A DNA stretch of 64,000 nucleotides from Corallochytrium limacisporum Hawaii (GCA_002811645.1 PDIP01000049.1:56223-120222), one strand, 5' to 3'. Shown: positions 7,057 to 62,754, numbered from the stretch's first letter. Made by a program: numbers and translations. Notes: generated by a model from the letters alone, not told the origin.

Positions 7057-7080
7057 CCCCCCCCCCCCCGGGGGGGGGGG
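7057..7080. promoter_or_regulatory. C13G11 palindromic homopolymer tract in divergent promoter region
   Basis: C13 at 7057-7069 and G11 at 7070-7080, between the divergent SMPD4-like and TBC genes. Regulatory role is inferred. Confidence 0.5.
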
Positions 7081-7882
7081 CGAGAGAGAGAGAGAGAGAT
7101 TTCCCTGGTTCTTTTCCCTTTTCTTTTTACGCGCGTATTTTTTTTCCCTTGTGCTCTGCCTTCAATTCCCCCACCGACCGCTTCCCCCCCCCACGGGGGT
7201 GGGGGCCTGTGCAAGTTCGGGTGGCCGGGAGAACGGACGGAGGGGCCGGGCCACCACCAACCGGCCCGGCAGGTGAGACCCGGCGCAGGGTTTTTTCGCC
7301 TTCGCCCTTTTTGTCTGTTTTTGCCTCAGTGGCTTTTCTTGGTCTTCGCGCGTTTGGGTGCCCCACCGTCCCGACCCGGACGGACGGGTTTTGCTCCACA
7401 AAGTACGGGCCAAATTGAAAACAAAAAGTAAAAAACCGGGAAACTATCGTTCAAAAAAAAGAAAGACTTGGCACAGTGGCCTGGAGCAGTTGCGTACACA
7501 CACGCCCCAAACCCCCCCGTCCCCCAAAGGCCCCGGAAGGGACGGGAACAAAGCCGGCCGTGCCGGCGGTGTTGCGCAGTGCCCTGACGTTTTCATGCGC
7601 CTCGGTAGCAAATGCGTTGACAACTCAAGTGGTCCATTTATTGCGGCGTATTTAAAGTGACCTGGTGTACATTTCGTAGAAAACGTTCATGCGAAAGAAG
7701 TCGACCAAAACTAGAAGGATCTGTTGGCAAATGGTGACATGGGTTTCGAATGCCGTGACGTGTCAGCGTACAACAGACCACAAAACACAAGTAGTTTAAT
7801 GCAAGAGAAAAGAATGAGGACATGATTTGAAAGTGTCACTACGGTGTCTGTGTGTACCAACTAAAGAACAAACACAGAAGCC

Positions 7883-9766
7883 ATGACAAAAACCAAGAGC
7901 GCGGAACAGCGGCGACGTAAGCGAGACCGGCAACGGGCTCGTAGAATGTCACACAATGCGGAATCTCCGGGATCGCCCTCCGCCAAGTCTTCGAGCAGTG
8001 CACCTCCCCTCAAAGAAATTCTCGCACCGTCGGTTGTGGACTTAGATGTGGAGGCATCGATAAACAGAATCCGATCACATATGCCCAGGGAGAAGTCAAT
8101 AGAGAAGGGCTTTCTAGTCGACCAGGTGCTGGACGCCGTTGCAGACTACTCAAACTTTACCGGACCTGATCATGATCAACGAAGGCACCTAATTCGCCTA
8201 GCCGAGTCCTTCATTGAACTAACCTCGGAGGGTTCCCTTGTGCGGGATCTACCTTCCTCTGTGTGGCGGTCACTGAGGCAGTTGATTTGGCCGATTTTGT
8301 GCGGGGCGAAGCGGGCCACTGTGTCTCTGAAAGTGTTGCGAAAGATAGAGGAGGTCCACAGCTCCCACAAAGATTGCAACCAGATCGACCTAGATGTTAA
8401 CCGCTCGTTCAATCGGTGGGCTGCTTACGCCTTGCGGGTACAAAGCGAAGAGATTGGGGATCAGAAGAATGAAAACGACAAGAACGCGCGAGGTACATCA
8501 GCAGGCAAAGACAGTGAAAGTGTATCGAAAAGGGAGTCGGACACAGAGCGTGAAGGTTCTGATGTGGATCAGGACAAATCTATTAAGGAATCTGAGGAAG
8601 GAGAGGAAGGATCCCATACACCAGAGGATCTTCTCAAAACTGAATTGCGGGAATCTCTGCGACGAGTCCTGATTTATGGTCTGCGGGAAGCGGAGAAGTC
8701 TGAACAGAGCCGAGAGCAGCGTTTCCATTATTTTCAAGGCCTACACGACGTCTGTGGCGTCCTAATTCTAGCGGTCGGAGAGGAATCTGCGGCACCACTG
8801 GCAGCAGATCTGATCCGCGGACCGCTCCACCTCGCGGCAGGACCCGATCTGAAGAGGGTTGTCAGCCAGCTACGGCATCTCCGAACGCTGCTTGCGCTAG
8901 AGGACTACGCCCTCTACGCCACTCTAGAGCGCGGTGAGGTCGACCCTAGTGTGGGTGTGCTTGGGTGGGTCCTAACATGGTTTGCGTACGTAATTGACAG
9001 CGTTCCACTTCTCTGCTCATTCTACGATGCAACGTTTGCTGTGATGGCGCTGGAACGAATTGAGGCGATGAAAGCGGTTGAAGCAGCTATGGAAACTAAC
9101 AAGACTGGAGCATCATCAGCATCGTCCACGGAGGAGAGCGACGTGACACCAACCGGAGAAGACGACGGCAGCTTCACTGACGACACTGATGAGAGTTGGT
9201 TCGACATTGGCGGCGGTATGAGCGGCCCGATGAAATCGTTACTCTCTGAAAGCCATCGGCAGCAGATTGCGGCCATTCCGCTCTACTTTAGTGCTGCGTT
9301 ATTGCTGTCCAATAGCTTAGATCTACAGCGCGCCGTGCGAGACGAGGAACCGGGTGGCATGGCCGGGGCTGTAATGGCACTCAAGTCGATATCAACGCGT
9401 TTTAACGAGGAACATGAACCGACTGGTGGTGATTCGTCATCGCCCTCGCTCAAGACGCTATCATCCTTTGGGATGCTCTTGTCCAAGGCACGGGATCTGC
9501 GACACCGCTGGCCTATTGCCGATCTGCAGGCCGTCACACCGGCACAATCTACGAAGCAACCACCGCCCCGGGGCACGGTTGTCCCACACCCTACACCTGG
9601 ACTGAGCTATGGCACAGCGCTCTACGTTCGGGAGCGCAGGCGGTTCCGCGAAGTGTCCGAAACTCTGCTGCCTGGGACATCCTCACTGATGCCCGTTGTG
9701 GCCTCTGCTACTGCCGTGGCACTCCTGGGCGCTGCACTAGCCATTGCCTTCCAAGCAAGTTCTTAG
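7883..9766 (+). CDS. TBC1D20: TBC-domain Rab GTPase-activating protein, TBC1D20/Gyp8-like, tail-anchored
   Basis: LRQLIWPILCG, R-finger IDLDVNRSF, Q-finger HYFQGLHDV, WVLTWFAY and a C-terminal TM helix. Confidence 0.8.
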   Translation: MTKTKSAEQRRRKRDRQRARRMSHNAESPGSPSAKSSSSAPPLKEILAPSVVDLDVEASINRIRSHMPREKSIEKGFLVDQVLDAVADYSNFTGPDHDQRRHLIRLAESFIELTSEGSLVRDLPSSVWRSLRQLIWPILCGAKRATVSLKVLRKIEEVHSSHKDCNQIDLDVNRSFNRWAAYALRVQSEEIGDQKNENDKNARGTSAGKDSESVSKRESDTEREGSDVDQDKSIKESEEGEEGSHTPEDLLKTELRESLRRVLIYGLREAEKSEQSREQRFHYFQGLHDVCGVLILAVGEESAAPLAADLIRGPLHLAAGPDLKRVVSQLRHLRTLLALEDYALYATLERGEVDPSVGVLGWVLTWFAYVIDSVPLLCSFYDATFAVMALERIEAMKAVEAAMETNKTGASSASSTEESDVTPTGEDDGSFTDDTDESWFDIGGGMSGPMKSLLSESHRQQIAAIPLYFSAALLLSNSLDLQRAVRDEEPGGMAGAVMALKSISTRFNEEHEPTGGDSSSPSLKTLSSFGMLLSKARDLRHRWPIADLQAVTPAQSTKQPPPRGTVVPHPTPGLSYGTALYVRERRRFREVSETLLPGTSSLMPVVASATAVALLGAALAIAFQASS

Positions 9767-9972
9767 ATTCATTACTTACACATTGACGATTCAGTACACA
9801 CACTGATTCTAATTTCCTCTGCCTACGAAAACCCAGCCCGGGGACTTCAAAGGTTTTCTTCTGATTCATAACTGTCCGTATATAAAACATACTCGGCTCC
9901 CCCTTTGTTCCTGTAAGCGCACCACCGTTCTCCTTCATTCTGCCCCGCTGGTCGTCCCCGCCTACCGCGCGT

Positions 9973-10038
9973 CCCCCCCCCCCCCNNNNNNNNNNNNNNN
10001 NNNNNNNNNNNNNNNNNNNNNNNNNNNNNNNNNNNNNN
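9973..10038. other. C13 run followed by a 53-N assembly gap
   Basis: C at 9973-9985, N at 9986-10038. Confidence 0.95.
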
Positions 10039-15080: not shown

Positions 15081-15098
15081 CCCCCCCCCCCCGGGGGG
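15081..15098. promoter_or_regulatory. C12G6 tract upstream of LRR gene
   Basis: Seen directly, 660 bp upstream of the LRR ATG. Role is inferred. Confidence 0.45.
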
Positions 15099-16359
15099 CC
15101 GTACGCGGGGAAAAAGGCGAGAACAGCGAACCCCAAAAATTAAAAAGTAAAAGAAAGGGCGAGCGAGAGACCTAAAGATTTGAGCGAAGGAAGGGCCGGG
15201 GATAGAGAGAAAAAGGAGCGAGCCGCCGAGCCCCCGGGGGCCCCCTTCCTGGCCTTCCCATCTGCGCTCCAAAAAATGGGGGGATGAGATTTCCCCTCTC
15301 TCTCCCCCCTCTTTTTTCTTTTCCCGGTGCGTTCCTCAGGTCAGTCCCGCATTCTATCAATTTTTCATCTCTTTCTCTTGCGCTCCTTACAAAAGCCACT
15401 GACTCATCTATTGCTCCCGTGATAACGCCTCCCGGAACTCCCTATTGAAAGTATGGACATTCTGTCCGAGAGATGTAGTACTACTTTTCTTGGTGGTTGG
15501 CGGGTCCGTCGCTCGTCGCAGTCCCAAAAGGCGGGAGAATTCAATTTTTTCTTTCTCCTCTGGCCTCTTGTCCTTATCTATCATTTTTCTTTGGTTTTTT
15601 ATGCGCTATCTGCGGGGCCAAAGGGGAGGGAGGGGGGGTAACCAAAGCGCCTGTGTTTTGACAACCAACCACAAACCTTACCCCCTTTGCGGTCCACCTT
15701 TCTATTTTTTTTTGGTTTTGGGTGAGTGATCCCAAGAGCCAGTATCGAAGCAATGGGCAAAGGAAGAAGAGGGAGGTCCCGGGGGGAGGGAGGCAGGTGG
15801 CCGTCGTCGTCGCCTGGCTTTGTGGTATTCGGGAGGGAAGGACGAAGAAAGGGGGGGGGGGCCATGGATGGTGCCCTTCTAAGAGGGGGGAGAGGGGCGA
15901 AGGTCCTGGTGCCAGAGACCAAGAGAACAGAGGCAAACGTGAGGGGGAGAATGATCGGGCCCAATGTAGCAGCAATGTGCCATTAAAACATAATTGATGA
16001 AGAAAAAAATGCAAGGAATAAAAGAAAATATGACACGGGCTGGTCAGGTGGTAACACACCGGAGTGGGCCCGCCCCCGGGGACTGGGACGAGAAGGGGGA
16101 GGGGGGGGGGCGGGGGAGAGCCTGGGCTCTACCCGGGCCACCCGATAAAATGGAAAACTCGCTCAATCCCCCACCCTCCCGGGGGGGCTTCCCCGGGTCA
16201 CGTCCCCGTCCCCGGTACCTAACGTATACCATCAGAATCGCTTGTAAATTCCTTTAATATTTGATGGTCCGGATTGATATGACTTCGGAGTAAGTGCTAG
16301 GCGCTTAGCTGCCCTTTCCGCTGCAACTGTGAGCCTTGGCGGCCACACTGGTTTTCGAT

Positions 16360-16438
16360 NNNNNNNNNNNNNNNNNNNNNNNNNNNNNNNNNNNNNNNNN
16401 NNNNNNNNNNNNNNNCCCTCCCCCCCCGGGGGGGGGGG
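16360..16438. other. 56-N gap followed by C8G11 tract
   Basis: N at 16360-16415, C at 16420-16427, G at 16428-16438. Confidence 0.9.
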
Positions 16439-19744: not shown

Positions 19745-19758
19745 CCCCCCCCCCCGGG
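19745..19758. promoter_or_regulatory. C11G3 tract upstream of COG2
   Basis: Seen directly, 454 bp upstream of the COG2 ATG. Role is inferred. Confidence 0.4.
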
Positions 19759-21933: not shown

Positions 21934-23045
21934 GAAAACCCGGGGCGGAACGCCGAATCATCAACCACCCCCTTCCTCTCGCCATTTGGGCCTTATATAA
22001 GCACACTGCCAAACATTGGCGTGTTTTTTTTTTCTTTCTCAAAGCGGTGCGGTGCCCAGGCGCAGGCCAGCCAATGCTCAGACGGGACGGACTGGACGGA
22101 CGACGGTTGCCTGCGTGCGTGCGTGTGTTCCCTCGGAGCGAGTGAGCGAGAGAGAGAGAGAGATCTCGTCATCATCGCTTGCGCGGCCAAAAAAAAAAAG
22201 AGGAAAAAGGACAAAGAAAATCAAAGGCCCAGCACCAGAAAACACCGGCCCTTCCGCGCGGCGGACACGGGAGGGAGCAGGGAAGGGGGGGGGGAGAAAA
22301 AGGGAGAATGGGACCGACCGTGTCCGCCCCCTTTTTTACTACGGGCGAGAGAAGGAATAGGCAAAAAAAAAGGAAAAAAGGAATGGGTGCGGAGTGCGAG
22401 CCCGAGGCGCACCCCCAAGCCGCCCGCCGGGGGGAGGGAGGGGGTTCATTGTTTTGCCTTTCCTTCATTCATTCTTTACTGAGTGTTTGGGAACCGTTCT
22501 TTTTCTTTTTTTTTTTGGTTGGGAAGTCACTGACGTGGCTGGGCTGGGACTCTGTTCGTTTTTTCCCTTTAAAAATTTTGTCGGGTTCTCTCATTTTTTT
22601 TTTGGTCTATGCTCCCAGGTCTCATTCCTTTTTTTTCCCTCTATGTGCCTGGGGGCCCGAAAGCAAAAAAGCAAAAGAGCAAAAAGCAAAAAAAATGGCA
22701 GAACAGAGAACGGCCCGCGGAGGGGGGGGGGCACGCCGTGTTTTCGGTGAATTGTGTTCCCCCGGCGTAACCTTAACCCCCCCTCCCCTTCTGCCCAAGC
22801 CTCCGGAGGGGGGATAAGTGCTTGGTACGTAGCGGTGGGCAGTCCGGTATTGAATGTATCACACTGGAGAGTATGCAAGGGGCAACAACCACGGGGCCCC
22901 GCGGTGGGAGGGGAGGGGGGGGTTCGGTCACCAAGCGCAGCAGTAGTGGTGGTGGTGGTACTCCCTTTGCCCCGGGCGACAAACACAGGGGGGAGGGGGG
23001 CGGGAAGGGGGAGCGGGATTGGCAAAAGCAAAACTACCCGGTCGG

Positions 23046-23061
23046 CCCCCCCGGGGGGGGG
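23046..23061. promoter_or_regulatory. C7G9 tract (second G10 at 23148-23157)
   Basis: Seen directly, 320 bp beyond the START gene stop. Role is inferred. Confidence 0.4.
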
Positions 23062-23380
23062 TATTCTTAGAATATTGAATCAATAGATCAGGAGCCTCGA
23101 AGGCAACCCCCGGCGCGGCGTGGCGCTCCGTGCCCAGGGCCGGCTTTGGGGGGGGGGTGATCGTTCGCCCGCAGAGGATCTGGTGGGCAAGGAATGTCGA
23201 TACTGTGTAGTAATGTCAATAGATGTTCAACGCAAGTTTAATGAATGTCAACCCTTGGGTTTCTGTGATCGAAAATGAAGGAAGGGATGCCTATGGTTTC
23301 ATGTGGTGCTGATGGATATGAAGATGACAATTGATGTACATGCCATTCCTTGGGAATCGATGGCAATGTGAACAGCCCAC

Positions 23381-27557: not shown

Positions 27558-28733
27558 GGTTTGATAAGTCCACAGCTATCCAATATATGCGGCTACCCGC
27601 TGTGGATTTTCATCCCTAAGAATCTGTCGTATGGGAACACATACACTGCACCTACCATCTCATAGATATCGTACTTACAAGCTATGCTCATATCGTCATA
27701 CTTGATCTACCTCCATCAGGAAACGCACCAGACCGCTAAGAATTCCAAGACAACAAGAATCGCGCCGTTCCAAGATTATGCGGTCTCAATGTTTGCCTTC
27801 ACCGCCCCGCCCAAGTCCCGGGGGGGCCCTCTTGGCGCTGCCTCTAACTTTTTTCCGGTGGGTCTGCTGCTGTCGATGGCGCGAAAATGGACTCCCCATC
27901 TGAGAGCCCTCCCCGCATATCGGGGATCACAATCACCGGACCCCATCGTTAAGGCGTGCTGTCAATTTGACCAGAAATCTTTCTTTCTGATGTCGTTCGA
28001 CTCTTTGTTATCGTCACGCCCGAAGTTTTGGGGCAGCCCATTGTTTTACTATTGCAACGGGCGTGCCCTCTCGTGACTTGGAGCCGGAAAGAAAAGGGCA
28101 GGACAGCACTACCAACCCTCTCACCCTAACTATCCACATTTCCCCATAGTCAATGAACCGGGAGAGAAAAATTCTCTGCGCAACGGGAGTGGGGGGGGGG
28201 AGGTAGGACGCAGAATTTCCTTGCTTTTGTTCCTTCCGCTGTCAGCTGTCAGGAGCAATTATACTGTTCATAAGGTCCTGTACGGGTACCTCGGCTCCTG
28301 AAAAAGGGAGATCCATCCATCTATCCTGTATCGCGTAGAGTCGCTGCCACGACACTTCTTTTTAGTGTGGTTTGATACCCACCGTAAACCGGAGATTTGC
28401 GACGCGCTGAACGGATCGCCATCCTTTGAAGCGTAGTAACACTTCGGTACCCGACCGAGAGAGGGAGGGCATAGAGAGGTGAATGTCAGTTGGCACACCT
28501 TCGGAAGGTGATGGAACTGATTATCCGCAAGCGCATTCTGCGCACTTCTTCGCCACAGTTGTACGATGCTCCTGTTTCGTTGTGATATACTATTTCAAAG
28601 ACCGAAAATTGAGTGGGAGAATCCTTTGCCATTCTCTTGTTTGTGTGCATATGAAGTTAGAATAACAGCCTGCGAAACGTACTGTTGCAGAGACCGTCGT
28701 TTGACATCTCCGCGGAAACTAAAACGGGAACCA

Positions 28734-30031: not shown

Positions 30032-30504
30032 CCCCCCCCCCGGGCGGCCCTCCCTGCTGCGCATTCTCGGGACCCAAGACAGCCAGAGTAAAAGGGCATC
30101 CCTCATCGCTAACAACGACCCCGCCAAAATTCCTACGGAACCCAAAAAAAAAAAGCGGCCGCCACCACCTCTACTCAAACCCGAATCCCCTTCCCCCGGT
30201 ACCGTCTCAAAGCTCTCTTGGTGTCCTATTGTTTCCTCCCAGATCAGTCGGGCCTCCCGTTGCTCTTCCCTCTCTCTCCCTCCCCCCCCCACAAAACCCC
30301 CCGCGCGGGTCCCCGCAACGAAATGCCATCCGGCTGTATACGCCACCCACCACCCCCAAGCCCCACTTTTCCCGGGGCGGGGGAAATTTCAATGAGAAAA
30401 AAAACAGTAAAGGTAGGGCCTTATTGCTTTAATTGCTCCCCCCTTCTTCCGTTCGCCCTGCGCGGGCCTTCCCCATCCTGGCCCGAAGGACCCCCGGGGG
30501 GGGG
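30032..30504. promoter_or_regulatory. Two C/G tracts (C10G3 at 30032, C5G9 at 30491) within degraded sequence
   Basis: Seen directly. Role is inferred. Confidence 0.4.
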
Positions 30505-37180: not shown

Positions 37181-37202
37181 CCCCCCCCCCGGTGGGGGGG
37201 GG
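37181..37202. promoter_or_regulatory. C10-ggt-G9 tract in divergent promoter region
   Basis: Seen directly between the Nudix and IQCC-motif genes. Role is inferred. Confidence 0.5.
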
Positions 37203-38220: not shown

Positions 38221-40572
38221 TTAGAGCTCGTCCTTGTCAAGAGTGTCAGCAAAGGCATTGAGGTCGATGCCTTCTAGTGGGTTGCCAGGTCCATCGTCGC
38301 TGGCGGTCATGTCATCTGCCTCATCCTCCGGGAAGGCCTCTCCTTCAAGTCCAGCATCCAAGGGGATAGACATGCCCACCCGCAGCAGAGACTCGATGCG
38401 TCCGGCGTACTCGGTCGGCTCCACGCCAGTGTAACCGACGCGGAGCATGGCGGTGTCAAAGAGAACCCTGGCCATGTCCTTGGACTGTTGTTCCTCCCGC
38501 CGGGCCTCATCCTTAGCAAGGTCGTTCAGGCGACGGATGATGGGGTGACGTGGGTTGATCTCCAGGCTCTTCTTCTGGTTCAGGTAGAACTGAGTCATGG
38601 GATCCACCATCTCACCCGCCTGTGCCTTCATCATGCGTTCCATGGTACCGGAGACACCAAACTGCTTGGCTACCACGGCACATGGGCTATCTACAAGACG
38701 GACGGAGACGTTCACCTTGTCAATGTGCTCCTTCAGAACATCCTTCAGCCAGGTGCTCAGGGGCTCCAGATCATCTTCGTACTGTTTCAACAGTTCTTTG
38801 GTGCGGGCACCCTTGCCGCCCTCAATGCCTTCCTTGGCGGCGTTCATGATCTGCTTACCCTCGTACTCGTAGAGCTGATTAAACACATACTCGTCCGCAC
38901 CCTCCACAGCGTGAATAACCTCAATATTGCGGGCCCGCAGGGACTCGACCAGAGGAGAGGTCTCGACATCCTCTGTGTCAACACCAGACAGGAAATAGAT
39001 TTGGTTCTGACCGGGCTTCATACGCTCAATATATGTTTCTAGGGAAACATTGCCATTAGGATCCTCACTAGTGGGGAAACGCAGCAATTTTGAGATCTTG
39101 TCCTTGTTCTTGTTGTCCAGGGTCACACCAAGCTTCAAAGACAAGCCAAACTCCTTCCAGAAGGCGGCATACTTCTCGTCATCCTTGCTTATTTTCTTGA
39201 TCAGGGCGAGAGCCTTATTGGTCAGCTGTTTCGCGATCTGACTGAGGCCACGGGAGGCCTGAAGAGTCTCGCGGGAGACATTCAAAGGTAGATCCTCAGC
39301 AGATACGATGACCTGCATGAAGTTGAGGTAGAGCGGCAGCATTTCCTGCAGTTCGTCGCTAATGAAAACGTTGCGGATGTAGAGACGGACGTTGTGACTT
39401 TTCTCGGCATAGAAATTCTCGGATTGGTAGAAGTTGGCCGGTGCCTTTGAGGGGACAAACATAAGCGCGCTGAAGTCCTGGTCACCCTCGGCCTTGAAGT
39501 GGGACCAAGTCAATGGCGGGTTCTCGTCCTTGGCAAAGAGCTTGTAAAACTCGATGTACTCCTCGTCAGTCACATCAGACGGGCTGCGGCTCCAGATTGG
39601 TTTGTTGTCATTCATAAGCAGCCATTCCTTCACAGTCTTGGTCACCGTTTTAGTGCTGGGAGCCTCCCACTCGTCCTCAGCTTCGGCACCTTCGTCCTCC
39701 CGCTCTGCCTTCTCAGCCTCGTGGGCATCGATGGCCTCCTGCACCTCCTCGTCTGTGAGATTGACCTCCTCCTTGACCTCCTTTTCAATTAGGGTGTGGA
39801 TCGGGAACTGAATGAATTCAGAGTAGCGGTAGATAACCTCCTTCAGCTTGTACTCCGTGGTATATTCCTTGCTATCCTCCTTGAGGTGCAGGGTGATCTG
39901 AGTACCGCGGCCCAGAGTGTTACCGTGGGGATCCGGGGAGATTGAGTAAGATCCGGCATCACTGCTCCAAACCCACTGCGTGTCATCATCATTGGACTTG
40001 GTGCGGACAGTGACATGATCGGCCACCAGGTATGCAGAGTAGAAACCGACACCGAACTGACCGATGAGATTGCTAGCGTCAGCGGCGGACTCAGCGTCCT
40101 TGAGCTTCTGAATGAAATCGCTGGTACCGGAGCGGGCAATAGTGCCAAGGTTGCGCACCAACTCCTCCTTTGTCATTCCCACACCAGAGTCAATAATGTG
40201 CAACAAGTTATTCTCCTCATCGGGCACGATACGGATCTCCATCTCTTCCTTAGTGGCCAGCTGGTCCTTGTCAGTAAGGGACATGAAACGAATCTTATCC
40301 AGGGCATCACTGGCGTTGGAGATCAGCTCCCGAAGGAAAATCTCCTTGTGCGTGTAGATGCTGTTGATGATCAGCTTCATCAGACGGCTGACCTCAGCCT
40401 CGAATTCGTGGGTCTCGCCAGCGGTCTTAAGGTTTTCAATCTCATCCACTGACAGAGTTTCCACATCGACACCAGCCTCTTCGGCACCAACCCGGCCGAC
40501 GAAGCACAGCGTCAGCATGAGGACCAGGCACAAAGCCATAAGGCCCTTTTTCATGCTCGTATGCATGCGCAT
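38221..40572 (-). CDS. HSP90B1: Endoplasmin / GRP94 (ER Hsp90)
   Basis: Signal peptide, KEIFLRELISNASDALDKIR, NLGTIARSGT, IGQFGVGFYS, DLPLNVSRETLQ, LEINPRHP and C-terminal KDEL. Start is ATG 40572 or one of the next two Met. Confidence 0.97.
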   Translation of the reverse strand: MRMHTSMKKGLMALCLVLMLTLCFVGRVGAEEAGVDVETLSVDEIENLKTAGETHEFEAEVSRLMKLIINSIYTHKEIFLRELISNASDALDKIRFMSLTDKDQLATKEEMEIRIVPDEENNLLHIIDSGVGMTKEELVRNLGTIARSGTSDFIQKLKDAESAADASNLIGQFGVGFYSAYLVADHVTVRTKSNDDDTQWVWSSDAGSYSISPDPHGNTLGRGTQITLHLKEDSKEYTTEYKLKEVIYRYSEFIQFPIHTLIEKEVKEEVNLTDEEVQEAIDAHEAEKAEREDEGAEAEDEWEAPSTKTVTKTVKEWLLMNDNKPIWSRSPSDVTDEEYIEFYKLFAKDENPPLTWSHFKAEGDQDFSALMFVPSKAPANFYQSENFYAEKSHNVRLYIRNVFISDELQEMLPLYLNFMQVIVSAEDLPLNVSRETLQASRGLSQIAKQLTNKALALIKKISKDDEKYAAFWKEFGLSLKLGVTLDNKNKDKISKLLRFPTSEDPNGNVSLETYIERMKPGQNQIYFLSGVDTEDVETSPLVESLRARNIEVIHAVEGADEYVFNQLYEYEGKQIMNAAKEGIEGGKGARTKELLKQYEDDLEPLSTWLKDVLKEHIDKVNVSVRLVDSPCAVVAKQFGVSGTMERMMKAQAGEMVDPMTQFYLNQKKSLEINPRHPIIRRLNDLAKDEARREEQQSKDMARVLFDTAMLRVGYTGVEPTEYAGRIESLLRVGMSIPLDAGLEGEAFPEDEADDMTASDDGPGNPLEGIDLNAFADTLDKDEL

Positions 40573-41070
40573 GTTTGGTAAGACGACTTTTGTCAAACAA
40601 CCTTTTTACTCTCAAAGAAACTTGCTCCCCGCTGGCAACATTCATCACTTGAATGGGACCCGTTGGTGTAAGTACCAGCGTGATACGATGGTCATGCGCG
40701 AACGCACAAGCATAGACGCGAGTCTAATCAAAAGTCAACAGAAAGCAACAGTCACATGCACCAAAAGAAACCGCAAACAAACGACACTGACAATCGTGGC
40801 TGGACCCATAGCCACGCGCGGTCCCCAAGTTAGGTCAAACGTGCCACTGATTAGGAAACACACCGATACAAAGTGCGTTGGTCATTGACGGTCCCCGAGC
40901 GGTTTGTACAGGAACCGAATCTTGCGATCCCCCAAAGGTAAAAAGTAAAGAAAGAAAAAGAAACGAAAAGAGAAAAAAAAAGCCAAACACACTGCCACTT
41001 CGCCGAGTTGAGAGAGAGCTGGAGAAAAGAATGGGTCCGATCGGGTTCTCGCGTTTGCGAACTTCGCCTG

Positions 41071-41090
41071 CCCCCGGGGGGGGGGGGGGG
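41071..41090. promoter_or_regulatory. C5G15 tract in GRP94/ARL2 divergent promoter region
   Basis: Seen directly. Role is inferred. Confidence 0.5.
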
Positions 41091-41783
41091 CCGGGGGAGA
41101 TTTCCGAGACTATTTGCCGTTCCCAAGCCGAGGGGGAATGACGGGGAGCAGCTGGATAGGTCTGGATTGTTATGTATCTCACCACTTCAATACTGTATGA
41201 CTTACAATTCCAGGAAATCATTTTGATTATTTGACCCGTTTCGTTCTCACCAACGCCCGGTCGCGCGGACACACGGACACTTTTCGAGAACAAAACATCC
41301 CTGGCCAAATGGCCGTGACTGATTGGCTAGAATCCCATATTTTAATGATTTATTAGGAGATCAGTTTTTATTCCGGTAGAATGAGAGGGGGGAACTGGTC
41401 GGTGGCAGGAAAAGCCACCCCGTCCCTACGCACGGCGCTCTGCCAGACCCGGGCGGTTGGCCTTGGAAAACACGGGCCCGCGAGTTCTGCGCCCTAGAGT
41501 GTGCCCCTCCAGTGGTCCTTTTGTGTGCTGCGGAAAGAGACGGTGAGGCCGTGCGCCCTTCAGGGCTCAGGACTCTTTTGGTACCATCGGCGCCGATTTA
41601 CCAACGAGGTTGAAGAAACCGTCACTGTGATGGTATGTTTGAAAGACTGGGGTTGGAATTGTTAGCAGCAACAAGGCGACCCACAGACATCGTAGATTGG
41701 GTCAGGTGGCAGTACCGGAAGCGTAGCCATGACGTGATTGGTTGAGATAGCCCCAAATGTAGTCAACGCAACGAGGAAGCACA

Positions 41784-42335: not shown

Positions 42336-42509
42336 TATGACAAAGAATCAATTCACTTAAGTGAGAAATAGAAAAGCATGTAATAACAAAGACTCGGTTT
42401 TGGATGTAGGTGCGCTTTGTGTTGTGTCGACCTTTGTGAATGGTGTGACAGGAAGAGTTCGTAGACGTGCTTCAGAGACCAACCACCTTTCGTGACCTTA
42501 GATCAGTAC

Positions 42510-44186: not shown

Positions 44187-45904
44187 GATTGCTTAACTTT
44201 TGTGCAGAGATATCGCTAGACTTAGAACCGCGAAACGTCAAATCCTTCGGGAACGCTGCTCTTAGTTGGTCGTTGCTGGGCATTTCTCGCACTACACATT
44301 CATTGCACCCACAAGTACCTCACCATTACACAAGGTACCAGGACTGTCCAATTGCGATGTGTCCATTCCTTCAGTCCTTATCATCCCGGCCTTCGTGGAA
44401 CTGAGGTGATCATCCAAACTCCACCCTCTCCCCCGGCGGTCCAACCCCCCCCCAAAAACAGAACTGGTACTCTACACACTGGAGACCCAATCATACACAG
44501 CGCACTCGTTCTAATGTGCTTCTGTGGGTGTATTTTGCAACTAATCCCAACCCCGGCGACTATGGTCGCGGAATGAAGATCACTCGCCGCAAACCTCATC
44601 AGAACGTAGCCTATGCGCATATTATTAAGCGCAAGTACGACGTACGGGAATCATCGATCAATGGAATTGTGCCCCGAGTGGTAGGCAACCGCGGAGGCAA
44701 GCACGGAGAAGCATCCAACACTGTACACCTGCTGGGCAGACCTTAAAATTGCCTGCCAAAACACAAAAACAGGCAAAGCACAGAGTCAGTGTACCGCCCA
44801 GCACCAGTCCGCAAATTGCAATCGTCGTCAAAGACTTGCTGCTTTAATCAGTCACCAACCCACAGCAGGGGGTACGGGAAAATGCCGGGCCCGGGGCCCA
44901 TATAAGGCCTGCAACCCCCCTTGTCTCCACGCCCCTTGACTCCATTTCAATCTCCCAGGGTTGACCCCAAGATTTGCCTGCTGGCAGGAACTGAGTATCC
45001 TGGTATGTTCTCTGGAAAGCAGAATGGTAGTTGACGGCGGTGGTCATCATCATCTTGCATGCTGCTGCGTCATGATGAACGTAACTATCTGTGATGCACG
45101 CTTGTGTCTTTTCGTGGCCGTTGCTCCGGTTTGCGAACGTGACATGTCTCTAGTGGCTGAAAATACAATCTTACGCGGGTAGGACACGTGCGATGTGTAT
45201 ATCGCTCTGTGTGTGTGAGAGTGCGGTTGCGTGTGTTTAATCAGTGGCATATGGCAGAATTCCAAAACAGCGTTTGATGGCCAGCGCGAACGCAAAGCAT
45301 CCCAACTACAAATTCATCATTGTCGCACAAATAACTCGGAGACATTTTGGAATCTGTATATTGTGGACTTGCTTTTGTATACAACAACACGCAAATTGTT
45401 GTTGGAGATGAGTGCTGTTGTGGCGAAGCTACACGGTCGTCGATGGGTTGCGCAGACCCCGCACAGAATCTCACCGTCATCTCCTACCGGTTTGGAACAG
45501 AACCGTTTTGGTCTCCGGCAATACAAGAAGTAACTGGTCGTCCACATACACACACAGAGTTAGCAATCGACGGCGTGTTCACTGACCAGCCTTTTCCTTT
45601 GGAGGATTTCCGCTGGTTTCACAGAAGCCGCGGAAGGAGCGGCTAGAGCGCTTCCACGTCCGCTGGACTTTACTTTGACCCAGTGCGCACACAGTGTCAT
45701 GCTACCACTAAAAGTATAAAGTCATCAACAAAGAATCTACCACTGCCGATGAAGACAGCTACCACAGTTTCGAATTCTGTTGTCGTGTTTGTTTTCCGAA
45801 GTGCTGAGTCAGAGCGCGTCCCCGAACCGCTCTAATTTGACGTATCTTTGTCCACCGCCTAGTATTACATATACCCAGCATTAAATTGCACAACAGTGGC
45901 GCGA

Positions 45905-45924
45905 CCCCCCCCCCGGGGGGGGGG
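45905..45924. promoter_or_regulatory. Perfect C10G10 palindrome
   Basis: Seen directly in fairly clean flanks between the two ligase paralogs. Role is inferred. Confidence 0.5.
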
Positions 45925-48506: not shown

Positions 48507-48517
48507 GGGGGGGGGGG
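48507..48517. promoter_or_regulatory. G11 tract upstream of ligase copy B
   Basis: Seen directly, 321 bp upstream of the ATG. Role is inferred. Confidence 0.4.
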
Positions 48518-51686: not shown

Positions 51687-52023
51687 CCCCCCCCTGGAGG
51701 GGGGCAAGCTACCCGGAAATTCTAGCCCCCCCTTCCCACCTTGCCCACCATCGCCTCCCTTTCCCGTCTTCCCTCCCCGCCCTTTCGCACTGGCTTCCCG
51801 TTTTTGTAAGGGGCACTACCCCTTGGAGATCTTGTCCTGCCGGCCCTTGGCTAATGAGGGAAGGGAGGGAAGCGGAGGAAAGGGGGGGGGGGAGTGGAGC
51901 TGAGACCCACCGGAGGGATCGAGCGGTTGAAGGAAATTGAAACCCCTCTGCTACCTCGGAGTCTTGGGTGCTGGTGGTTTTGGTAGATAAAGTGTAGTCA
52001 GGGAAAAAAAGCGGGGGGGGGGG
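51687..52023. promoter_or_regulatory. C8-tgga-G6, G11 and G11 tracts upstream of the glycoside hydrolase
   Basis: Runs at 51687-51704, 51882-51892 and 52013-52023. Role is inferred. Confidence 0.4.
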
Positions 52024-58443: not shown

Positions 58444-58771
58444 CAATCCGTTCTACATTGGTCACATTGTGACCAGTCCTCATGAAACTTAAATAGCTGA
58501 CACGTGTGGACAGTAACTGATAGCACTGATAGCCTTCGGTCCGAACAAATGTTTGTTTTCAACTACCTTTACTACACCTCTCCCAACTCAACCTCGTTTG
58601 TTGGGAGGACGGCGAGGTGGGGTGCAGCGGAGGACAAGAAGCGAACGCAACATAGCAAAGACTGCGGTGGAAACTCACCGTAACTTTCGCCGTCTTTTTC
58701 ATGCTGAAGGATGGCAAGGCCTTAATATGGAAACCAGTGCATCCTAGTAAATATTGTGTTTGTGTGTTTAT

Positions 58772-60925
58772 TCAAAGCGCGGAGTCCATGTGGTCTGCAT
58801 TCGCACTGTTACCATTTGTTTTCACAGTCGCAGGGGCATTTTCTGCTGCAACTGGTACATCACCGCCGTCCCCCGCGGTGACTGTTGCCTTCAGGTCGTC
58901 TGCCCCTTCTGGAACAGATGTCTCGACCTCCGCAAGGCGCTTCCTATCATTATCATCCGTGCTCATAGCCGACATGCGGTCGCCATCGTACGACATCGCA
59001 TCGTCATTGTTATTGCTGGTGTCGTTCTTTGAACCATCACCATCAGTGCCGTGTTCTTCTGTATGCGCAGCAGCAGCGCCGGCACTGTCTAGTTCCGCGG
59101 GGATTTTCATGACCGTCGGTGGATGAACTGGAGCATTTCCGCTGGAGTCACTATTATGGTGCAGCGCCGGTGTACCAACCCTTCGGTTTGTCGAGGTAGA
59201 CGGTGGCGGCGTCTTGTCCTCATCCATTGATGATGGTCCATTGCTGGGTGCTGCCTGGTCCCCTGGCGTCGATGGAGCCTTTGCATCGGTCGGTTCTGTT
59301 CGAGTCGGGCTCGACTGACTGCGACTGCGAGGCTTCGCATGTCCGCTCAGACTGCGCTTCGATCCACTACCTGTCACAGCCCCTCCTACACCCGCGTTGC
59401 TGGCTGCTGCCGCTGCAGCCGCGGCCGCCAGGTCGGACGAGACCGGCGAAGGGTTGTTCGTCAAGTTCGTTGGCAATGGCCACCGCGCCGCAACCAGGGC
59501 CGGAGTATTGTCAATTTTTGCCTGCACGGCAGCGCTTGCAGCAGCAGCAGCCGCCGCCGCCTTAACCCCTACTCCGACTTTGCCACCCCCAGCAGTACTA
59601 CCGCTACTCGCAGCCGCTCCATCAAACCCAGTAGTGTTGCTTCCGTCTCCGGCCCCTGCAGAACCCATGCTCAACACACCGGGAGCACCCAAGCCTGAGA
59701 TACCCACTCCGGGTATGTGCACAGCTGCGGTTGCCATGCCCATTGGGCCGGCGGTGCCAACCAACTGATCGTCTACGTGGTCTAAACGCGGACGCTTAAA
59801 GTCAGGAGCCCCGGCGAAGGCACCTAGTTCACTGCTGACATGGCTTGCCACGTCAGATTCCGCATCACTGACCTCAAACATTGACTCAAAGTCATTGTCG
59901 AGGACTGAATGGACCATAACGAGTTTCTCCAGACCAAAACAATACTTTCGACAGCTCTTGTAGTGGCGCCAGGGATCAAGGGCTAACTCAATGATGCGCT
60001 GTATCGTAAACGGTGGACCAGGAGCAGTGTTTAGGCGCCGTAGAATTCGGTTGCGGTAGCTCGCAAAGCTCTCATTATCGCCTTCATTACGTCCCATTGT
60101 GTCTGTCCCATCGCTTGCGGTAGCATTCCGCAGAGCGGCCATGCTTTGCATGAGCAGTTCAACTAGTACGGGTTTCACATCTGTCCATTCGTAACGCATG
60201 CTGCCCTCCGTTCCCATTTGCCGGATCGCTTCCCGTAGATCGTTGGGCACCGTGTAAGGCTCACGACCCTCCATGATCGGCCCCCGGCTCTCCCATTCCC
60301 ACCGGAATCGGCGGAAGCGCTGTGAAATACTTTCGTCGCCGGCGGCCGCGGGTGTGCCGCCCGAACTCGCGCTCCAAAGGTTGGGCATCGATGCAGACTG
60401 AGCGCTGCCGTCGCTCAGACCTCCGCCACCCGGGCTTTGTCCCCCTGTTGCTTTGTTAATGATGATGGTGGGTTCGTTGGCATGGTGATGTTGTGATGAT
60501 GATGACGATGAGCTTCCGCGTAGATCGTTTAGACTGTGTGACCCTCCACCAAAGGAGGACGACAATCCTCCCGTCATTGAACCTTCTTTGTGCGGGGCAG
60601 GTGGTGGAGGCATGTCGTCATCTGCATTATTTGTGCTACTATTGCCCTGCTTAATTGCTGCATTTGGCTCGGCTGTTGGTTCTTCCGTTGTTCCTGTAAC
60701 TGACGCAGCATGGGCCGCTTCCTGGGCTGCCAACGCCTCAGATGCTGCCTTCTGTTCCATTGTCGTAGACTGTGTTCCAACATCAGCAGATTCTAAGTCC
60801 GCTGACGGTTCCGTCGCTCCCGGACTGAGAGGATTCTGTGGTGATTTGTGGGCTTTTGGTGACATGGACTCCCCCGATGGTTTATCACTCTCTGAGACTG
60901 CAGGCCGTGTGTCTTCCTGTACCAT
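58772..60925 (-). CDS. PPP4R2: Protein phosphatase 4 regulatory subunit 2
   Basis: YEWTDVKPVL and PPFTIQRIIELALDPWRHYKSCRKYCFGLEKLVMV, flanked by disordered regions. Confidence 0.88.
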   Translation of the reverse strand: MVQEDTRPAVSESDKPSGESMSPKAHKSPQNPLSPGATEPSADLESADVGTQSTTMEQKAASEALAAQEAAHAASVTGTTEEPTAEPNAAIKQGNSSTNNADDDMPPPPAPHKEGSMTGGLSSSFGGGSHSLNDLRGSSSSSSSQHHHANEPTIIINKATGGQSPGGGGLSDGSAQSASMPNLWSASSGGTPAAAGDESISQRFRRFRWEWESRGPIMEGREPYTVPNDLREAIRQMGTEGSMRYEWTDVKPVLVELLMQSMAALRNATASDGTDTMGRNEGDNESFASYRNRILRRLNTAPGPPFTIQRIIELALDPWRHYKSCRKYCFGLEKLVMVHSVLDNDFESMFEVSDAESDVASHVSSELGAFAGAPDFKRPRLDHVDDQLVGTAGPMGMATAAVHIPGVGISGLGAPGVLSMGSAGAGDGSNTTGFDGAAASSGSTAGGGKVGVGVKAAAAAAAASAAVQAKIDNTPALVAARWPLPTNLTNNPSPVSSDLAAAAAAAAASNAGVGGAVTGSGSKRSLSGHAKPRSRSQSSPTRTEPTDAKAPSTPGDQAAPSNGPSSMDEDKTPPPSTSTNRRVGTPALHHNSDSSGNAPVHPPTVMKIPAELDSAGAAAAHTEEHGTDGDGSKNDTSNNNDDAMSYDGDRMSAMSTDDNDRKRLAEVETSVPEGADDLKATVTAGDGGDVPVAAENAPATVKTNGNSANADHMDSAL

Positions 60926-62696
60926 TGTGTTTACAAGTGAGCTCTTTTTAACTGATTGTTGTAACGAAAACTTAATTTGACCGCATGCTTGCTTCCTTTT
61001 TCACTATCGTTAGCTTTGTAAAACGAACATGCTTTTGTTCTGCTAAGAAAGACACTATCGTTGTTTGTTGTTGATATTCGATATGGGATTCACACTATTT
61101 GCATTCATCTTCTTGCCTGATTTTTACATAAAAAGGAAATATAAATGGTCTCACTTTCACCCAATACAAGGAACCGCTATACATTTGTAAATGGAGCTGT
61201 ATTCTCAATAGTTCCCCTGGGTCCAATGATTGACCACATGCCCACAAGTTTCTTTGAACATTCCATATCTTTTGCGGAAATACGTTGATGTCAATTGAAA
61301 GAAACAAACCACGGCATCTTACTACTGATGAAAAAGATATCTATTTACAACTTGATGGAAATTAACAAGCTCAGAATAATAATTCAGTCCGCACGCCGAT
61401 CTACACTGCTTGGACATCTGCCATCCTTCCCAAACCCCTCGTACACACCACAGTGACCACACCCCTGATCCCGGGAACCACCTCCCTGGAACCGTGGGTC
61501 GACCGCTCTTGGGGTTCGGCTGCCACGACGAAATAATGGGAAAAACTTGGGGGCCGGTCCCGTGGCTCTGCCCCCCCCTTTACAGTACTGAAACCACAGG
61601 ATTCTTATGCTTTTCTTTTTGTGGGTGGCTTCGGGCCGCTCGGGTTGTGTCAAAAGGAAAGAGTGGAAAAAAGGTACACCGGAGCGAGAGCCACGGGTCC
61701 AAGCCCACCCAGAACAGCACTACACACGAAAAGACTGAGAGAGATGGAGTGTCCAAGCCCAAAACGTACCTCTTTCACCAACTTCCCTGGCCGCACGCAC
61801 ACACACAGACACACATGCGCGCGCATACCACCTCCCCCAACCTTTTAGGCAGGCCAGAGAGGAACAGCTAAAGTAGACACCAGGGGGAACACGGCTATTC
61901 TTTCCCGTCAAACTGGTGGAGAGGCATTGCCGATTCGAAACAGCCACTTTCCTGTTCTGTGCAGATATTTTGGTCCCACCCGCCGTTTCCTGCAGATCAG
62001 CAGTGGCCCTGGGCAGGTCCGCGTTCCCTCGGTGCTCCGGTGCCCGGTCACAGTGTCATAGCCCGGAGAGGGGTGGAGGCTTCTCTCCGCTCTGGTCCCC
62101 TGTGGTTCCCCACGTTTACAGCAAATCTCTAACACAACGAAGACTGATACAGAAGTGTCAACACCCAGTGGATATTTTATGCCCAGGGACCGAAATGCAC
62201 CGGCTGATTGTCAGTGATGACGAACTGATCTTGTCGTTGACGGTGTCAATTTGACGGCAATTGGCGAGTCCTGGCAGGTCACTTCGTAGGTGTTAGTCAA
62301 GAGAAACAGAGTGGCCCAAGAATAACAAGCAGAGTACCCAAAAACCCAAACAAGCAGATAATAGCCCTGACGAACTCAACACGCAGCGGGATCACATCAG
62401 GAGGCAATAATCAGCAGCAGGTGCAGCTTAATGTCGGATTGATAAATATTTTTTGTGGGTCGCTCTGGTCGTGTAAGCTGGGTTGAGCTTTTTTATCATG
62501 TATGACCCTGGACCCAGCGCCTTAGCGAGAAAGCCTGGGCCACGGGTTGTTGGGCCCGCACTGGCGTGGAGGCCACCGGGCCTAAAACAAAGACCCCAGT
62601 TTCCATGGACCGCTGAATTCCGGTACATTCATCACTGCCTGTCTTAGTCCGCCGGACGAGAGAGAGAGTAAAGGAGGCCTAGAAAGTGGCCCGGGA

Positions 62697-62754
62697 GGGG
62701 GGGGGAGGGTGGTTGGTTGGTTTGGCAAACGGACTCTGCTTGGGAGGGGGGGGG
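62697..62754. promoter_or_regulatory. Two G9 tracts in the PPP4R2/kinase divergent region
   Basis: G runs at 62697-62705 and 62746-62754. Role is inferred. Confidence 0.35.

Follow-up and report, generated by a model that had tools for sequence, protein, structure and literature searches.

A spacer-restricted class of C(n)G(n) homopolymer tracts in Corallochytrium limacisporum

Abstract

The 24.1-Mb genome of Corallochytrium limacisporum carries ~6,660 C or G runs of at least 9 nt (~276 per Mb), a real class of G:C homopolymers that is restricted to spacers, has a length mode of ~10 nt and a strict orientation, and is not a core promoter. Abutting runs are arranged 5'-C(n)G(n)-3' whichever strand is read, an order that is real and extreme, and the number of tracts per spacer was shown to track spacer length, not promoter number or orientation. 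Tentatively, at about 45%, we read them as genuine tracts in non-transcribed spacer, produced by run-expanding mutation and purged by selection from DNA that makes RNA.

Results

Tracts were defined, for the main counts, as C or G homopolymer runs of at least 9 nt, and 28 such runs lie within the 64-kb window, the whole stretch of DNA that was analysed (Table 1). The 12 C(n)G(n) tracts reported there by a first-pass annotation were all verified (12/12) in coordinates and length. An ORF and codon-usage map of the window gave 20 credible ORFs (38.4 kb) and 15 non-convergent spacers, 12 of which hold a run of at least 9 nt. The annotation had counted 13 of 16 such spacers with runs and 0 of 5 convergent gaps; its pattern stands, the exact counts differing because of one or two doubtful short ORFs, and its three tract-less exceptions (24068-24626, 55314-55761 and 58444-58771) are tract-less here too. 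The convergent gaps are indeed empty (0/4), but their emptiness is uninformative because they total 645 bp, in which 0.5 tracts are expected.

The longest C/G run in credible CDS of the window is 7 nt, in keeping with the annotation's report of no runs of at least 9 nt in CDS. Across the window and 200 kb of another contig, 0 runs of at least 9 nt were found in 153 kb of CDS and 76 in 96 kb of spacer, where 0.55 would be expected under an i.i.d. model and 7.7 if the decay of shorter runs is extrapolated. One short ORF alone (14816-15175) overlaps a tract; it scores low as coding sequence, and its 119-aa product gave no Pfam match. Spacer runs of 8, 9, 10 and 11 nt number 13, 18, 28 and 14, respectively, which gives run length a second peak at 9-11 nt (modal length ~10 nt), and C/G runs of at least 9 nt exceed A/T runs of at least 9 nt in spacers (76 vs 47) at equal base composition. 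Tract lengths, which derive from an Illumina assembly often broken at tracts, spread widely (e.g. C5G15, C16G5 and C19G54), lone runs are four times as common as C+G pairs, and decayed copies with single T or A interruptions are frequent. The canonical G-quadruplex motif joins four stretches of 3 or more G by short loops, which one uninterrupted run can supply from a length of about 15 G; most runs (9-11 nt) lack this motif, and few qualify (G15 at 41076, G14-G21 in C25).

Table 1. Tracts of the window and mapped 5' untranslated regions
Feature	Position	Strand	Remarks
C13G11, palindromic	7057..7080	.	divergent spacer; ATGs 465 and 802 bp away; predicted DNA hairpin -16.2 kcal/mol
Lone C9	7184..7192	+	
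C13	9973..9985	+	assembled portion up to assembly gap 9986-10038
C12G6	15081..15098	.	overlapped by the 119-aa ORF
Lone G11	15851..15861	+	
Lone G10	16101..16110	+	
C8G11	16420..16438	.	39 bp 3' of COG2 stop codon; assembly gap 16360-16415 ends 4 nt earlier
C11G3	19745..19758	.	
Lone G10	22285..22294	+	
Lone G10	22722..22731	+	
C7G9	23046..23061	.	
Lone G10	23148..23157	+	
C3G7, weak	27817..27826	.	
Lone G10	28191..28200	+	divergent spacer
C10G3	30032..30044	.	
Lone C9	30282..30290	+	
C5G9	30491..30504	.	
C10-ggt-G9, interrupted palindrome	37181..37202	.	hairpin -12.5 kcal/mol
HSP90 5' UTR	40572..40608	-	RNA contigs of two samples end 40607/40608
C5G15	41071..41090	.	between divergent HSP90 and Arf; 463 and 581 bp to their transcript 5' ends
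Arf 5' UTR	41671..41783	+	RNA contigs begin 41671/41675
Acyl-CoA ligase 5' UTR	44187..44263	-	RNA contigs of both samples end 44263
Lone C9	44445..44453	+	182 bp upstream of acyl-CoA ligase transcript 5' end
C10G10	45905..45924	.	within 2.1 kb without RNA contigs
Lone G11	48507..48517	+	
C8-tgga-G6, interrupted palindrome	51687..51704	.	
Lone G11	51882..51892	+	
Lone G11	52013..52023	+	
Lone G9	62697..62705	+	
Lone G9	62746..62754	+	

The order of the two runs, annotated as almost always C then G, holds genome-wide: C5G5 occurs 1,311 times and G5C5 62 times, C7G7 454 times and G7C7 3 times, and C9G9 178 times and G9C9 not once (0). The C(n)G(n) excess is 21- to >150-fold, whereas G(n)C(n) does not depart from the A/T-junction baseline (A5T5 50, T5A5 62). 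The asymmetry begins at n=3, is confined to spacers and is absent from pyrimidine-to-purine tract junctions in general; no description of the rule was found in the literature searched. On average there is one C5G5 per ~18 kb and one C7G7 per ~53 kb, the latter unevenly spaced and locally clustered (gaps of ~108-255 bp beside one of 177 kb, among the coordinates listed). These counts bear out the proposed genome-wide element class, with systematic, strand-symmetric C(n)G(n) tracts throughout the genome and in non-coding DNA only.

Within the window, tracts do lie upstream of most start codons and are common to divergent pairs, as the annotation had noted. With transcript 5' ends taken as RNA contig ends, on which two independent samples agree within 4 nt, the tracts nearest to the 5' ends of the HSP90, Arf and acyl-CoA ligase transcripts are 463, 581 and 182 bp away, respectively, outside these mRNA contigs and beyond the distance of about 50 bp from the transcription start site that defines a core promoter. 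The minimum tract-to-ATG distance is 189 bp (p = 4.6e-6), some tracts sit 21-124 bp past stop codons, and a 10.6-kb stretch without ORFs holds 13 tracts. A core promoter should be present at most or all promoters, yet 22 of 55 promoter-bearing spacers (40%) have no tract, including all of those shorter than 600 bp (9/9), and the 33 occupied ones compare with 35.1 expected from a length-only Poisson model. After removal of ~190 bp next to each gene 5' end and 100 bp next to each 3' end, tract density was ~1 per kb whether spacers were divergent, tandem or convergent (chi-square p = 0.15), with divergent spacers slightly over-occupied (37 vs 28.9 expected). The annotation had linked the tracts to spacers that contain a gene 5' end, on the understanding that enrichment should outlast a correction for length; none does.

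Both C10G10 and C5G15 recur, with 0 differences, in Logan contigs that were assembled independently from the source reads; C10G10 is spanned together with both flanks by a 61-nt k=31 contig (45895-45955, 0 differences), and a similar tract is present in an RNA-run contig of another sample, a separate RNA library. All three assembly gaps in the window fall within ORF-free spacer, and reading frame is therefore not at issue. Two of the three adjoin tracts (C13 meets a gap at 9985/9986, and a gap meets CCCT-C8G11 at 16415/16416), as do 7-8 of 14 assembly gaps in a wider sample; none of our claims depends on continuity across gaps or on the lengths of gap-adjacent tracts. Since G9C9 is found in 50 IMG/VR contigs, assemblers do not suppress the G-then-C order. 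Comparison of the flanks of 31 sites revealed no common motif, inverted repeat or target-site duplication: 29 of the 31 lack an abutting direct repeat, information content is at most 0.16 bit (the trivial position -1 excepted), and flanks are unique and not inverted copies of each other. Some C-run...G-run pairs are 3-150 bp apart, and the sequences between them are mutually unrelated.

Discussion

In the reading that we prefer, replication slippage would be the run-expanding process that makes tracts in unconstrained DNA, and a polarity-dependent step may yield the C-then-G junction; as a candidate, a nascent 3' G end might fold back and copy the easily copied C-run, the reverse on a G-run template presumably being disfavoured. 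Selection would purge tracts wherever RNA is made because, as we propose, they cause frameshifts, strong hairpins or G-structures there, and the survivors may have a generic effect only, as stiff, nucleosome-disfavouring spacer segments that lie upstream of promoters and tend towards non-B DNA. Signs of turnover speak for this origin, namely the wide spread of lengths, the T- or A-interrupted copies and the lack of a conserved flank motif. Caenorhabditis, with over-represented G/C tracts that lack positional conservation, provides a precedent (PMC2211496). Against it, the second length mode at 9-11 nt is not obviously predicted, no established mutational mechanism known to us gives the C(n)G(n) order without also giving G(n)C(n), and fold-back predicts a G-run no longer than the C-run, a rule that C5G15 and C19G54 break unless slippage came later. 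An unrelated phage system places C(n)G(n) rather than G(n)C(n) directly after a promoter-like motif, a hint, by analogy, that selection for function can act on the orientation. Long G-runs are hazardous to replication, as shown in C. elegans lacking DOG-1 (PMC2211496), a FANCJ-type helicase on which Caenorhabditis-type tracts depend for their stability, and their abundance here could therefore mean that tracts are maintained.

Selection for a chromatin or boundary element is possible, if on the unlikely side: runs of ~10 bp, and 20-bp C(n)G(n) pairs above all, would be kept for nucleosome exclusion or phasing, non-B DNA under negative supercoiling between promoters, or binding of a G- or C-strand factor, which would meet C(n)G(n) as a head-to-head pair. 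By any of these candidate routes they would insulate transcription units in a compact genome. The length mode near one helical turn, the junction excess over an A/T-like G(n)C(n) baseline, the predominance of C/G over A/T runs, the location between transcription units and the slight over-occupancy of divergent spacers argue for such an element, as do Leishmania divergent strand-switch regions, which pair G-tracts of at least 10 nt with TBP/SNAP50 sites (PMC2679053). Yet occupancy is Poisson by length with no one-per-spacer regularity, the shortest promoter-bearing spacers, neediest of insulation, are empty (0/9), the distance to transcript starts varies (182-581 bp), lengths vary widely, and decayed copies are frequent. 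In the literature searched, no MNase or ATAC study of Corallochytrium turned up. That C(n)G(n) tracts are candidate replication initiation sites seems quite improbable, although their geometry would be compatible: read 5' to 3', each strand has the C-run first and the G-run second, so that a process 3' of the G-run or priming on the C-run would diverge from the junction as at a bidirectional origin, and G(n)C(n) would make the same process convergent. The strict orientation, the placement in non-transcribed spacers and site numbers of about the magnitude that the origins of a 24-Mb genome should have (C7G7 454; C5G5 1,311) are consistent with this; metazoan origins are accompanied by G-rich elements whose orientation bears on where replication starts, and the primase of eukaryotes synthesises primers of ~10 nt and is efficient on pyrimidine templates. 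However, C7G7 sites are uneven and clustered, lone runs far outnumber pairs, and the parallel with primase and primer length is numerology at this stage. Rather doubtful, too, is a role of C(n)G(n) as bidirectional spacer punctuation, either for replication initiation or as symmetric barriers against stray transcription that also organise chromatin; the exclusive C-then-G order would then stem from a polarity-dependent process running outward from the junction on both strands.

An orientation-independent core promoter or transcription-start determinant, the main reading of the first-pass annotation, is largely refuted and very improbable: the tracts upstream of start codons and common to divergent pairs gave it support, but the distances to transcript 5' ends and ATGs, the empty spacers, the tracts just after stop codons and the loss of enrichment on length correction all count against it. 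Scaffold gaps and contig ends are often located at tracts, which also interrupt Logan DNA contigs, and IMG/VR contig ends carry junk C/G runs, so that errors in homopolymers, hairpin joins in the de Bruijn graph or tailing of libraries could be suspected; a sequencing or assembly artefact is nevertheless extremely unlikely, as chemistry cannot give total avoidance of CDS and ATG-proximal DNA, coding boundaries are respected, flanks are unique and not inverted repeats, internal tracts are spanned independently (the k=31 contig), a separate RNA library holds a similar tract, and G-then-C is assembled freely elsewhere. We give as little credence to the idea that the tracts are footprints, or minimal remnants, left by a mobile element that has C(n)...G(n) at its ends, an idea for which the dispersal in many copies and the separated pairs speak; of the marks of a transposon, MITE or excision footprint, target-site duplication is absent at 29 of 31 sites and conserved terminal or internal sequence was not found, and the sequences inside separated pairs share nothing with one another.

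An excess of G:C homopolymers is already known in nematodes and trypanosomatids, and Corallochytrium offers an unusually clean case, with ~6,660 tracts in 24 Mb, a preferred length close to a helical turn and a near-absolute C-then-G rule. Either a polarity-dependent mutational process shapes the spacers, or a structure- or factor-based element has been selected there (chromatin, insulation or replication); if the tracts were punctuation, they would be a minimal, sequence-defined counterpart of animal origin and promoter G-rich elements in a close unicellular relative. Stable transfection works in Corallochytrium, a close unicellular relative of animals (10.1101/2020.11.12.379420), so that functional tests of the tracts are feasible. 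The practical lessons are that the tracts break short-read assemblies, that they should not be taken for core promoters, and that their absence from convergent gaps is a length effect.

Comparison with known systems

Poly(dA:dT) and poly(dG:dC) promoter elements of yeast reportedly disfavour nucleosomes (e.g. Iyer & Struhl 1995; Segal & Widom 2009). The Corallochytrium tracts are, like a nucleosome-excluding element, uninterrupted intergenic homopolymers of ~10 bp or more, and share with the yeast elements, which act orientation-independently through DNA structure, rigid intergenic runs of ~10-20 bp. The yeast elements occupy the nucleosome-depleted region immediately 5' of the start site, whereas two of the three mapped Corallochytrium cases are >450 bp off, and here G:C runs dominate, not A:T. 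G-rich OGRE/G4 elements are said to occur at metazoan replication origins (e.g. Cayrou et al. 2011/2012; Valton et al. 2014); the likeness is in G-runs in non-coding, promoter-side DNA of an animal-related lineage, and an effect 3' of the G-strand that depends on polarity would agree with the exclusive C(n)G(n) order, but most Corallochytrium tracts (G9-G11) cannot form a canonical three-tetrad quadruplex and their spacing is irregular.

In Caenorhabditis, the available part of Zhao, O'Neil & Rose (2007, PMC2211496) describes mono-G/C runs as far over-represented, dispersed on all chromosomes and intergenic or non-coding, not tied to individual genes and without positional conservation, and proposes a role in chromatin, not a gene-specific one. 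The Corallochytrium tracts resemble them in being strongly over-represented, absent from exons, dispersed, non-coding and not gene-specific, but the C. elegans tracts counted are 18-32 nt long at 3-6 per Mb, as against a mode of ~10 nt and ~276 per Mb (at least 9 nt), and the C-then-G junction rule of Corallochytrium has no mention for Caenorhabditis in that part of the paper (PMC2211496). In Leishmania, according to the portion of Thomas et al. (2009, PMC2679053) consulted, G/C runs of at least 10 nt are the sole motif that recurs around the regions where RNA polymerase II starts in both directions, but are also 'peppered throughout the genome' and so insufficient to define initiation, their significance being left open. 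G/C runs scattered genome-wide are common to both organisms; the palindromic C(n)G(n) arrangement of Corallochytrium is not described for Leishmania in the same portion. The genes of Leishmania form polycistronic units, between which switch regions are few, whereas Corallochytrium genes are monocistronic and of mixed orientation, with tracts 180-580 bp from mapped mRNA 5' ends.

Gene map and sampled sequence

The window (64 kb, 54% G+C, three assembly gaps) carries long, mostly uninterrupted eukaryotic ORFs, and its gene content includes HSP90, Arf, COG2, HAUS5, PPP4R2, RNA12, RabGAP, prefoldin, a START-domain protein, and two tandem acyl-CoA ligases. The genes for actin and alpha-tubulin, whose published functional promoter fragments measure 551 and 764 bp, respectively, were also located in the genome. 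The assembly totals 24,109,830 bp in 286 contigs; the published genome is described as 24.1-Mb and intron-poor, and was assembled with SPAdes from Illumina paired-end and Nextera mate-pair reads (PMC5560861). Genes were mapped using a codon-usage score trained on long ORFs and run over the window and the first 200 kb of another contig of the same genome, C25 (C25:1-200000), resulting in an ORF-based map, distinct from the published annotation, of 78 credible ORFs (153 kb) and 76 spacers (96 kb). Gene-context statistics were taken from this 264 kb and from 15 three-kb loci. Two short ORFs that overlap tracts (C or G runs of at least 9 nt, or a C-run followed directly by a G-run) score low for coding and have no Pfam match; the short ORFs retained in the map are the prefoldin and START proteins. 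Hidden genes or RNAs in the long tract-rich spacers were rejected, as searches there for tRNAs, Rfam RNAs, and Pfam-domain ORFs found none. One stretch of 10.6 kb (C25:82700-93300) lacks a credible ORF and contains 13 C/G tracts as well as a gap of 478 nt. It may represent an island poor in genes or rich in repeats, or contain a gene that the ORF map missed.

Tract abundance, length, and order

All tracts listed in the first-pass annotation were found in the window as described. No C or G run of at least 9 nt occurs in the 153 kb of CDS, versus 38 in 36 kb of divergent, 38 in 55 kb of tandem, and 1 in 5 kb of convergent spacer. The 76 spacer runs compare with 0.55 expected under an i.i.d. model and 7.7 by extrapolating the decay of shorter runs, and with 47 A/T runs of that length at equal base composition; genome-wide there are about 6,660 (roughly 276 per Mb). 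Spacer run counts fall from 190 at 5 nt through 82 at 6 nt and 30 at 7 nt to 13 at 8 nt, followed by a second mode of 18, 28, and 14 at 9, 10, and 11 nt, respectively. The commonest length is 10 nt among solitary runs, which exceed C-G units by about 4 to 1 in the 264-kb sample, and, counting both halves, about 18-21 nt among abutting pairs. Lengths vary widely (C5G15, C16G5, C19G54), and the exceptionally long C19G54, on contig C8 (G000:C8:25982-26054), lies between divergent ORFs at distances of 360 and 411 bp. The sampled spacers are extremely rich in homopurine/homopyrimidine tracts, and the C and G runs usually lie inside these; at 15 nt or more there are 177 such tracts, against 4 after mononucleotide shuffling, and at 30 nt or more 18 against 0. 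The hairpin potential of the C/G tracts (-10 to -16 kcal/mol) is real yet unremarkable, being no stronger than in dinucleotide shuffles.

The C-before-G order proposed from the window holds across the whole genome, where C9G9 occurs 178 times and G9C9 not at all, C7G7 454 times and G7C7 3 times, and C5G5 1,311 times and G5C5 62 times. A5T5 and T5A5 occur 50 and 62 times, respectively, so that G(n)C(n) stands at the A/T-junction baseline and the bias reflects C(n)G(n) being specifically over-represented rather than the reverse order being depleted. Within the sample, asymmetry is already present at n=3 (66 vs 37), rises to 26 vs 5 and then 15 vs 2, and is confined to spacers, the CDS being symmetric. 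The order is also local, with C-G exceeding G-C by 7 to 1 for runs 0-20 bp apart and an even split beyond 200 bp. A wider strand-composition switch around the junctions was rejected, since the GC-skew trend in 15 sites is weak and noisy and general pyrimidine-to-purine and purine-to-pyrimidine tract junctions are symmetric. Interrupted tracts, with a single T or A within the C-run or at the junction (e.g. 37181, 51687), keep the C-G orientation, their counts being inflated by overlapping matches.

Position relative to genes and transcripts

The first-pass annotation had linked the tracts to spacers holding a gene 5' end and proposed C(n)G(n) as a core promoter. The first association vanishes after correction for length and flanks. 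After removal of 190 bp at each 5' end and 100 bp at each 3' end, spacers hold about 1.0 tract per kb, a density that is homogeneous across orientation classes (chi-square p = 0.15), observed and expected numbers being 37/28.9 for divergent, 37/44.4 for tandem, and 1/1.7 for convergent spacers. Tracts are indeed lacking in the convergent gaps of the window, but this is uninformative, the four gaps amounting to 645 bp with 0.5 tracts expected; convergent gaps are short (median about 190 bp), and the single tract in the convergent spacers of the whole sample is not significantly below the 3.9-4.1 expected. The location of the tracts in untranscribed DNA accounts for the reported association. A preference of gene 5' ends for facing tracts was likewise dismissed, because the 14 of 18 neighbor genes that do so at 15 C9G9-centred loci are not above the fraction of 0.66 expected from spacer lengths (p = 0.22). 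On the strand of the downstream gene, 17 solitary runs read as C and 9 as G, a difference that is not significant.

Two DNA and two probable RNA runs (X3 and X4) were compared with window 40500-46400 (5,901 letters), and transcript 5' ends of three genes, read from contigs rather than raw reads, match within 4 nt between the two RNA samples (see table). The C10G10 tract at 45905 lies inside 2.1 kb without RNA contigs. The tracts of this region are outside stable mRNAs, though rare RNAs may escape contigs. Within 41726-44195, X3 is identical to the window, while the Arf and ligase transcripts of X4 depart from it at about 1% of positions, from which X4 is likely a second strain. A search of encoding contigs returned no record of a second strain or assembly.

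The core-promoter role is not supported, as transcript 5' ends lie 182-581 bp from the nearest tract, no tract is closer than 189 bp to an ATG in the 264-kb sample and the 15 site-centred loci, and 22 of 55 promoter-bearing spacers are empty. This ATG-proximal avoidance has p = 4.6e-6 under uniform placement and 0.004 when only occupied spacers are counted as independent; past stop codons, tracts are found at 21, 39, and 124 bp. The 33 occupied promoter-bearing spacers compare with 35.1 expected by length alone, and none of the nine shorter than 600 bp has a tract. One tract per promoter is excluded, since occupancy lacks promoter-wise regularity and ORF-free stretches carry many (13 in 10.6 kb). 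The tandem acyl-CoA ligase paralogues (42510-44186 and 46366-48186) have one tract each, at comparable distances from the ATG (258 and 320 bp) and on opposite strands; conservation between their upstream regions was rejected, as these do not align. An octamer, TTAAGTTT, occurs exactly (window 51284-60975) 30-60 nt upstream of the ATG in four consecutive minus-strand genes (49486, 52848, 55762, and 58772) and is absent upstream of the other 74 sampled ORFs, apart from a single 7-of-8 match at -183.

Coordinates of transcript ends, assembly gaps, and phage-like palindrome regions
Feature	Position	ATG	Detail
HSP90 RNA contig ends	40607/40608	40572	nearest tract C5G15 (41071-41090), 463 bp from transcript 5' end
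Arf RNA contig ends	41671/41675	41784	nearest tract C5G15 (41071-41090), 581 bp from transcript 5' end
Ligase RNA contig end, both samples	44263	44186	nearest tract C9 (44445), 182 bp from transcript 5' end
Window gap	9986-10038		ORF-free spacer; directly after C13
Window gap	16360-16415		ORF-free spacer; ends 4 nt before C8G11
Window gap	33383-33645		ORF-free spacer; in C/T-rich low-complexity DNA
C25 gap	C25:37421-37513		flanks C12-tagctt / N / C15-tagctt
C25 gap	C25:72852-72907		flanks ...acggacacggtcctccc / N / G9tggacgaacacggtcctccc
Phage-like palindromes	3300042383_001130 6300-8400
Phage-like palindromes	3300021961_008451 2129-4672
Phage-like palindromes	3300027782_005864 11228-12817

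Assembly quality at the tracts

All three window gaps are in ORF-free spacer and thus leave reading frames unaffected. About half of the gaps in the further 200 kb of C25 adjoin C/G runs, and several contigs start with a C9G9 tract, which indicates that the assembly is prone to break at tracts. Two C25 gaps have near-identical sequence on both sides, and are probably overlaps left unmerged at homopolymers rather than missing DNA. Our conclusions are independent of gap-side tract lengths and of continuity across gaps.

That the tracts themselves are a sequencing or assembly artefact is highly improbable, although their exact lengths are Illumina-assembly values. Among the Logan contigs, independent assemblies (k=31) of the source sample's reads, a 61-nt contig over 45895-45955 holds C10G10 without difference and another fully spans C5G15; further DNA contigs break at tracts, and a separate, probably RNA, library has a contig with a similar C5G15-type tract from another locus. 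The flanks of 31 junction sites are unique and not inverted copies of one another, so that, with independent contigs crossing the tracts, hairpin-joining by the assembler was ruled out. Neither chemistry nor assembler error could explain the avoidance of CDS and ATG-proximal DNA, and in an IMG/VR control both orientations were assembled (50 contigs have G9C9 and at least 51 have C9G9, most matches being at contig ends), so assembly pipelines do not bar G(n)C(n). A mobile-element footprint was also rejected, as the 31 sites have neither a common flank motif nor a target-site duplication, and the sequences lying between separated C...G pairs bear no relation to one another.

Origin of the tracts

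The tracts are a genuine genome-wide class of G:C homopolymers, limited to untranscribed spacer, with a mode of about 10 nt and a C-then-G-only junction. We tentatively favor a mutational origin (probability about 0.45), in which a run-expanding process would seed tracts in DNA without constraint and selection would purge them wherever DNA is transcribed. This reading fits the even density, the Poisson occupancy, the broad spread of lengths, the decayed copies, and the unconserved flanks. The junction rule would require a further, polarity-dependent step; conjecturally, a nascent 3' G could snap back and copy the C-run, the reverse on a G-run template being disfavored, an idea that sits uneasily with G-runs exceeding their partner C-runs in length.

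The main rival, a selected structural or factor-binding spacer element, is favored by the mode in run length, by how specific the excess of C(n)G(n) is, and by the danger that long G-runs pose; we consider it unlikely given that short promoter spacers go without tracts and positional regularity is lacking. Putative replication origins would account neatly for the orientation, in that processes acting 3' of each G-run would move apart from the junction, and site numbers (454 to 1,311) are origin-like; the irregular spacing of the sites makes this less probable still.

Comparison with known systems

In each of three AT-rich (32-42% GC), phage-like IMG/VR contigs, 3-4 internal palindromes of the form C17-26/G15-27 lie at intervals of 400-1,200 bp. 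These are nearly all C-then-G, the only reverse-order junction seen being G5C19 in 3300042383_001130, and thus an unrelated system also uses this order. Each palindrome comes after a conserved TTGGCACG-N4-(C)TTGCT, similar to a sigma-54 -24/-12 promoter, and in many cases a second hairpin, TATCCCCTTGGGATA, follows it; the palindromes apparently sit at the 5' end of transcripts.

No regulatory sequences had previously been described in C. limacisporum, according to a 2020 transfection paper (10.1101/2020.11.12.379420), and searching the literature for the sequences themselves and for the organism together with chromatin terms yielded nothing relevant. According to the available text, Caenorhabditis has over-represented, non-exonic G/C tracts of at least 18 nt (3-6 per Mb) without positional conservation, for which a chromatin role was proposed (PMC2211496), and Leishmania has G-tracts of at least 10 nt beside TBP/SNAP50 sites at divergent strand-switch regions that are also spread genome-wide, their significance being left open by the authors (PMC2679053). 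The C(n)G(n) rule was not found in the available parts of either paper or of the C. limacisporum literature. As far as these sources go, over-representation and exclusion from coding DNA are shared features of the C. limacisporum tracts, which are set apart by their density of roughly 276 per Mb, by the length at which they peak, and by the C(n)G(n) rule.
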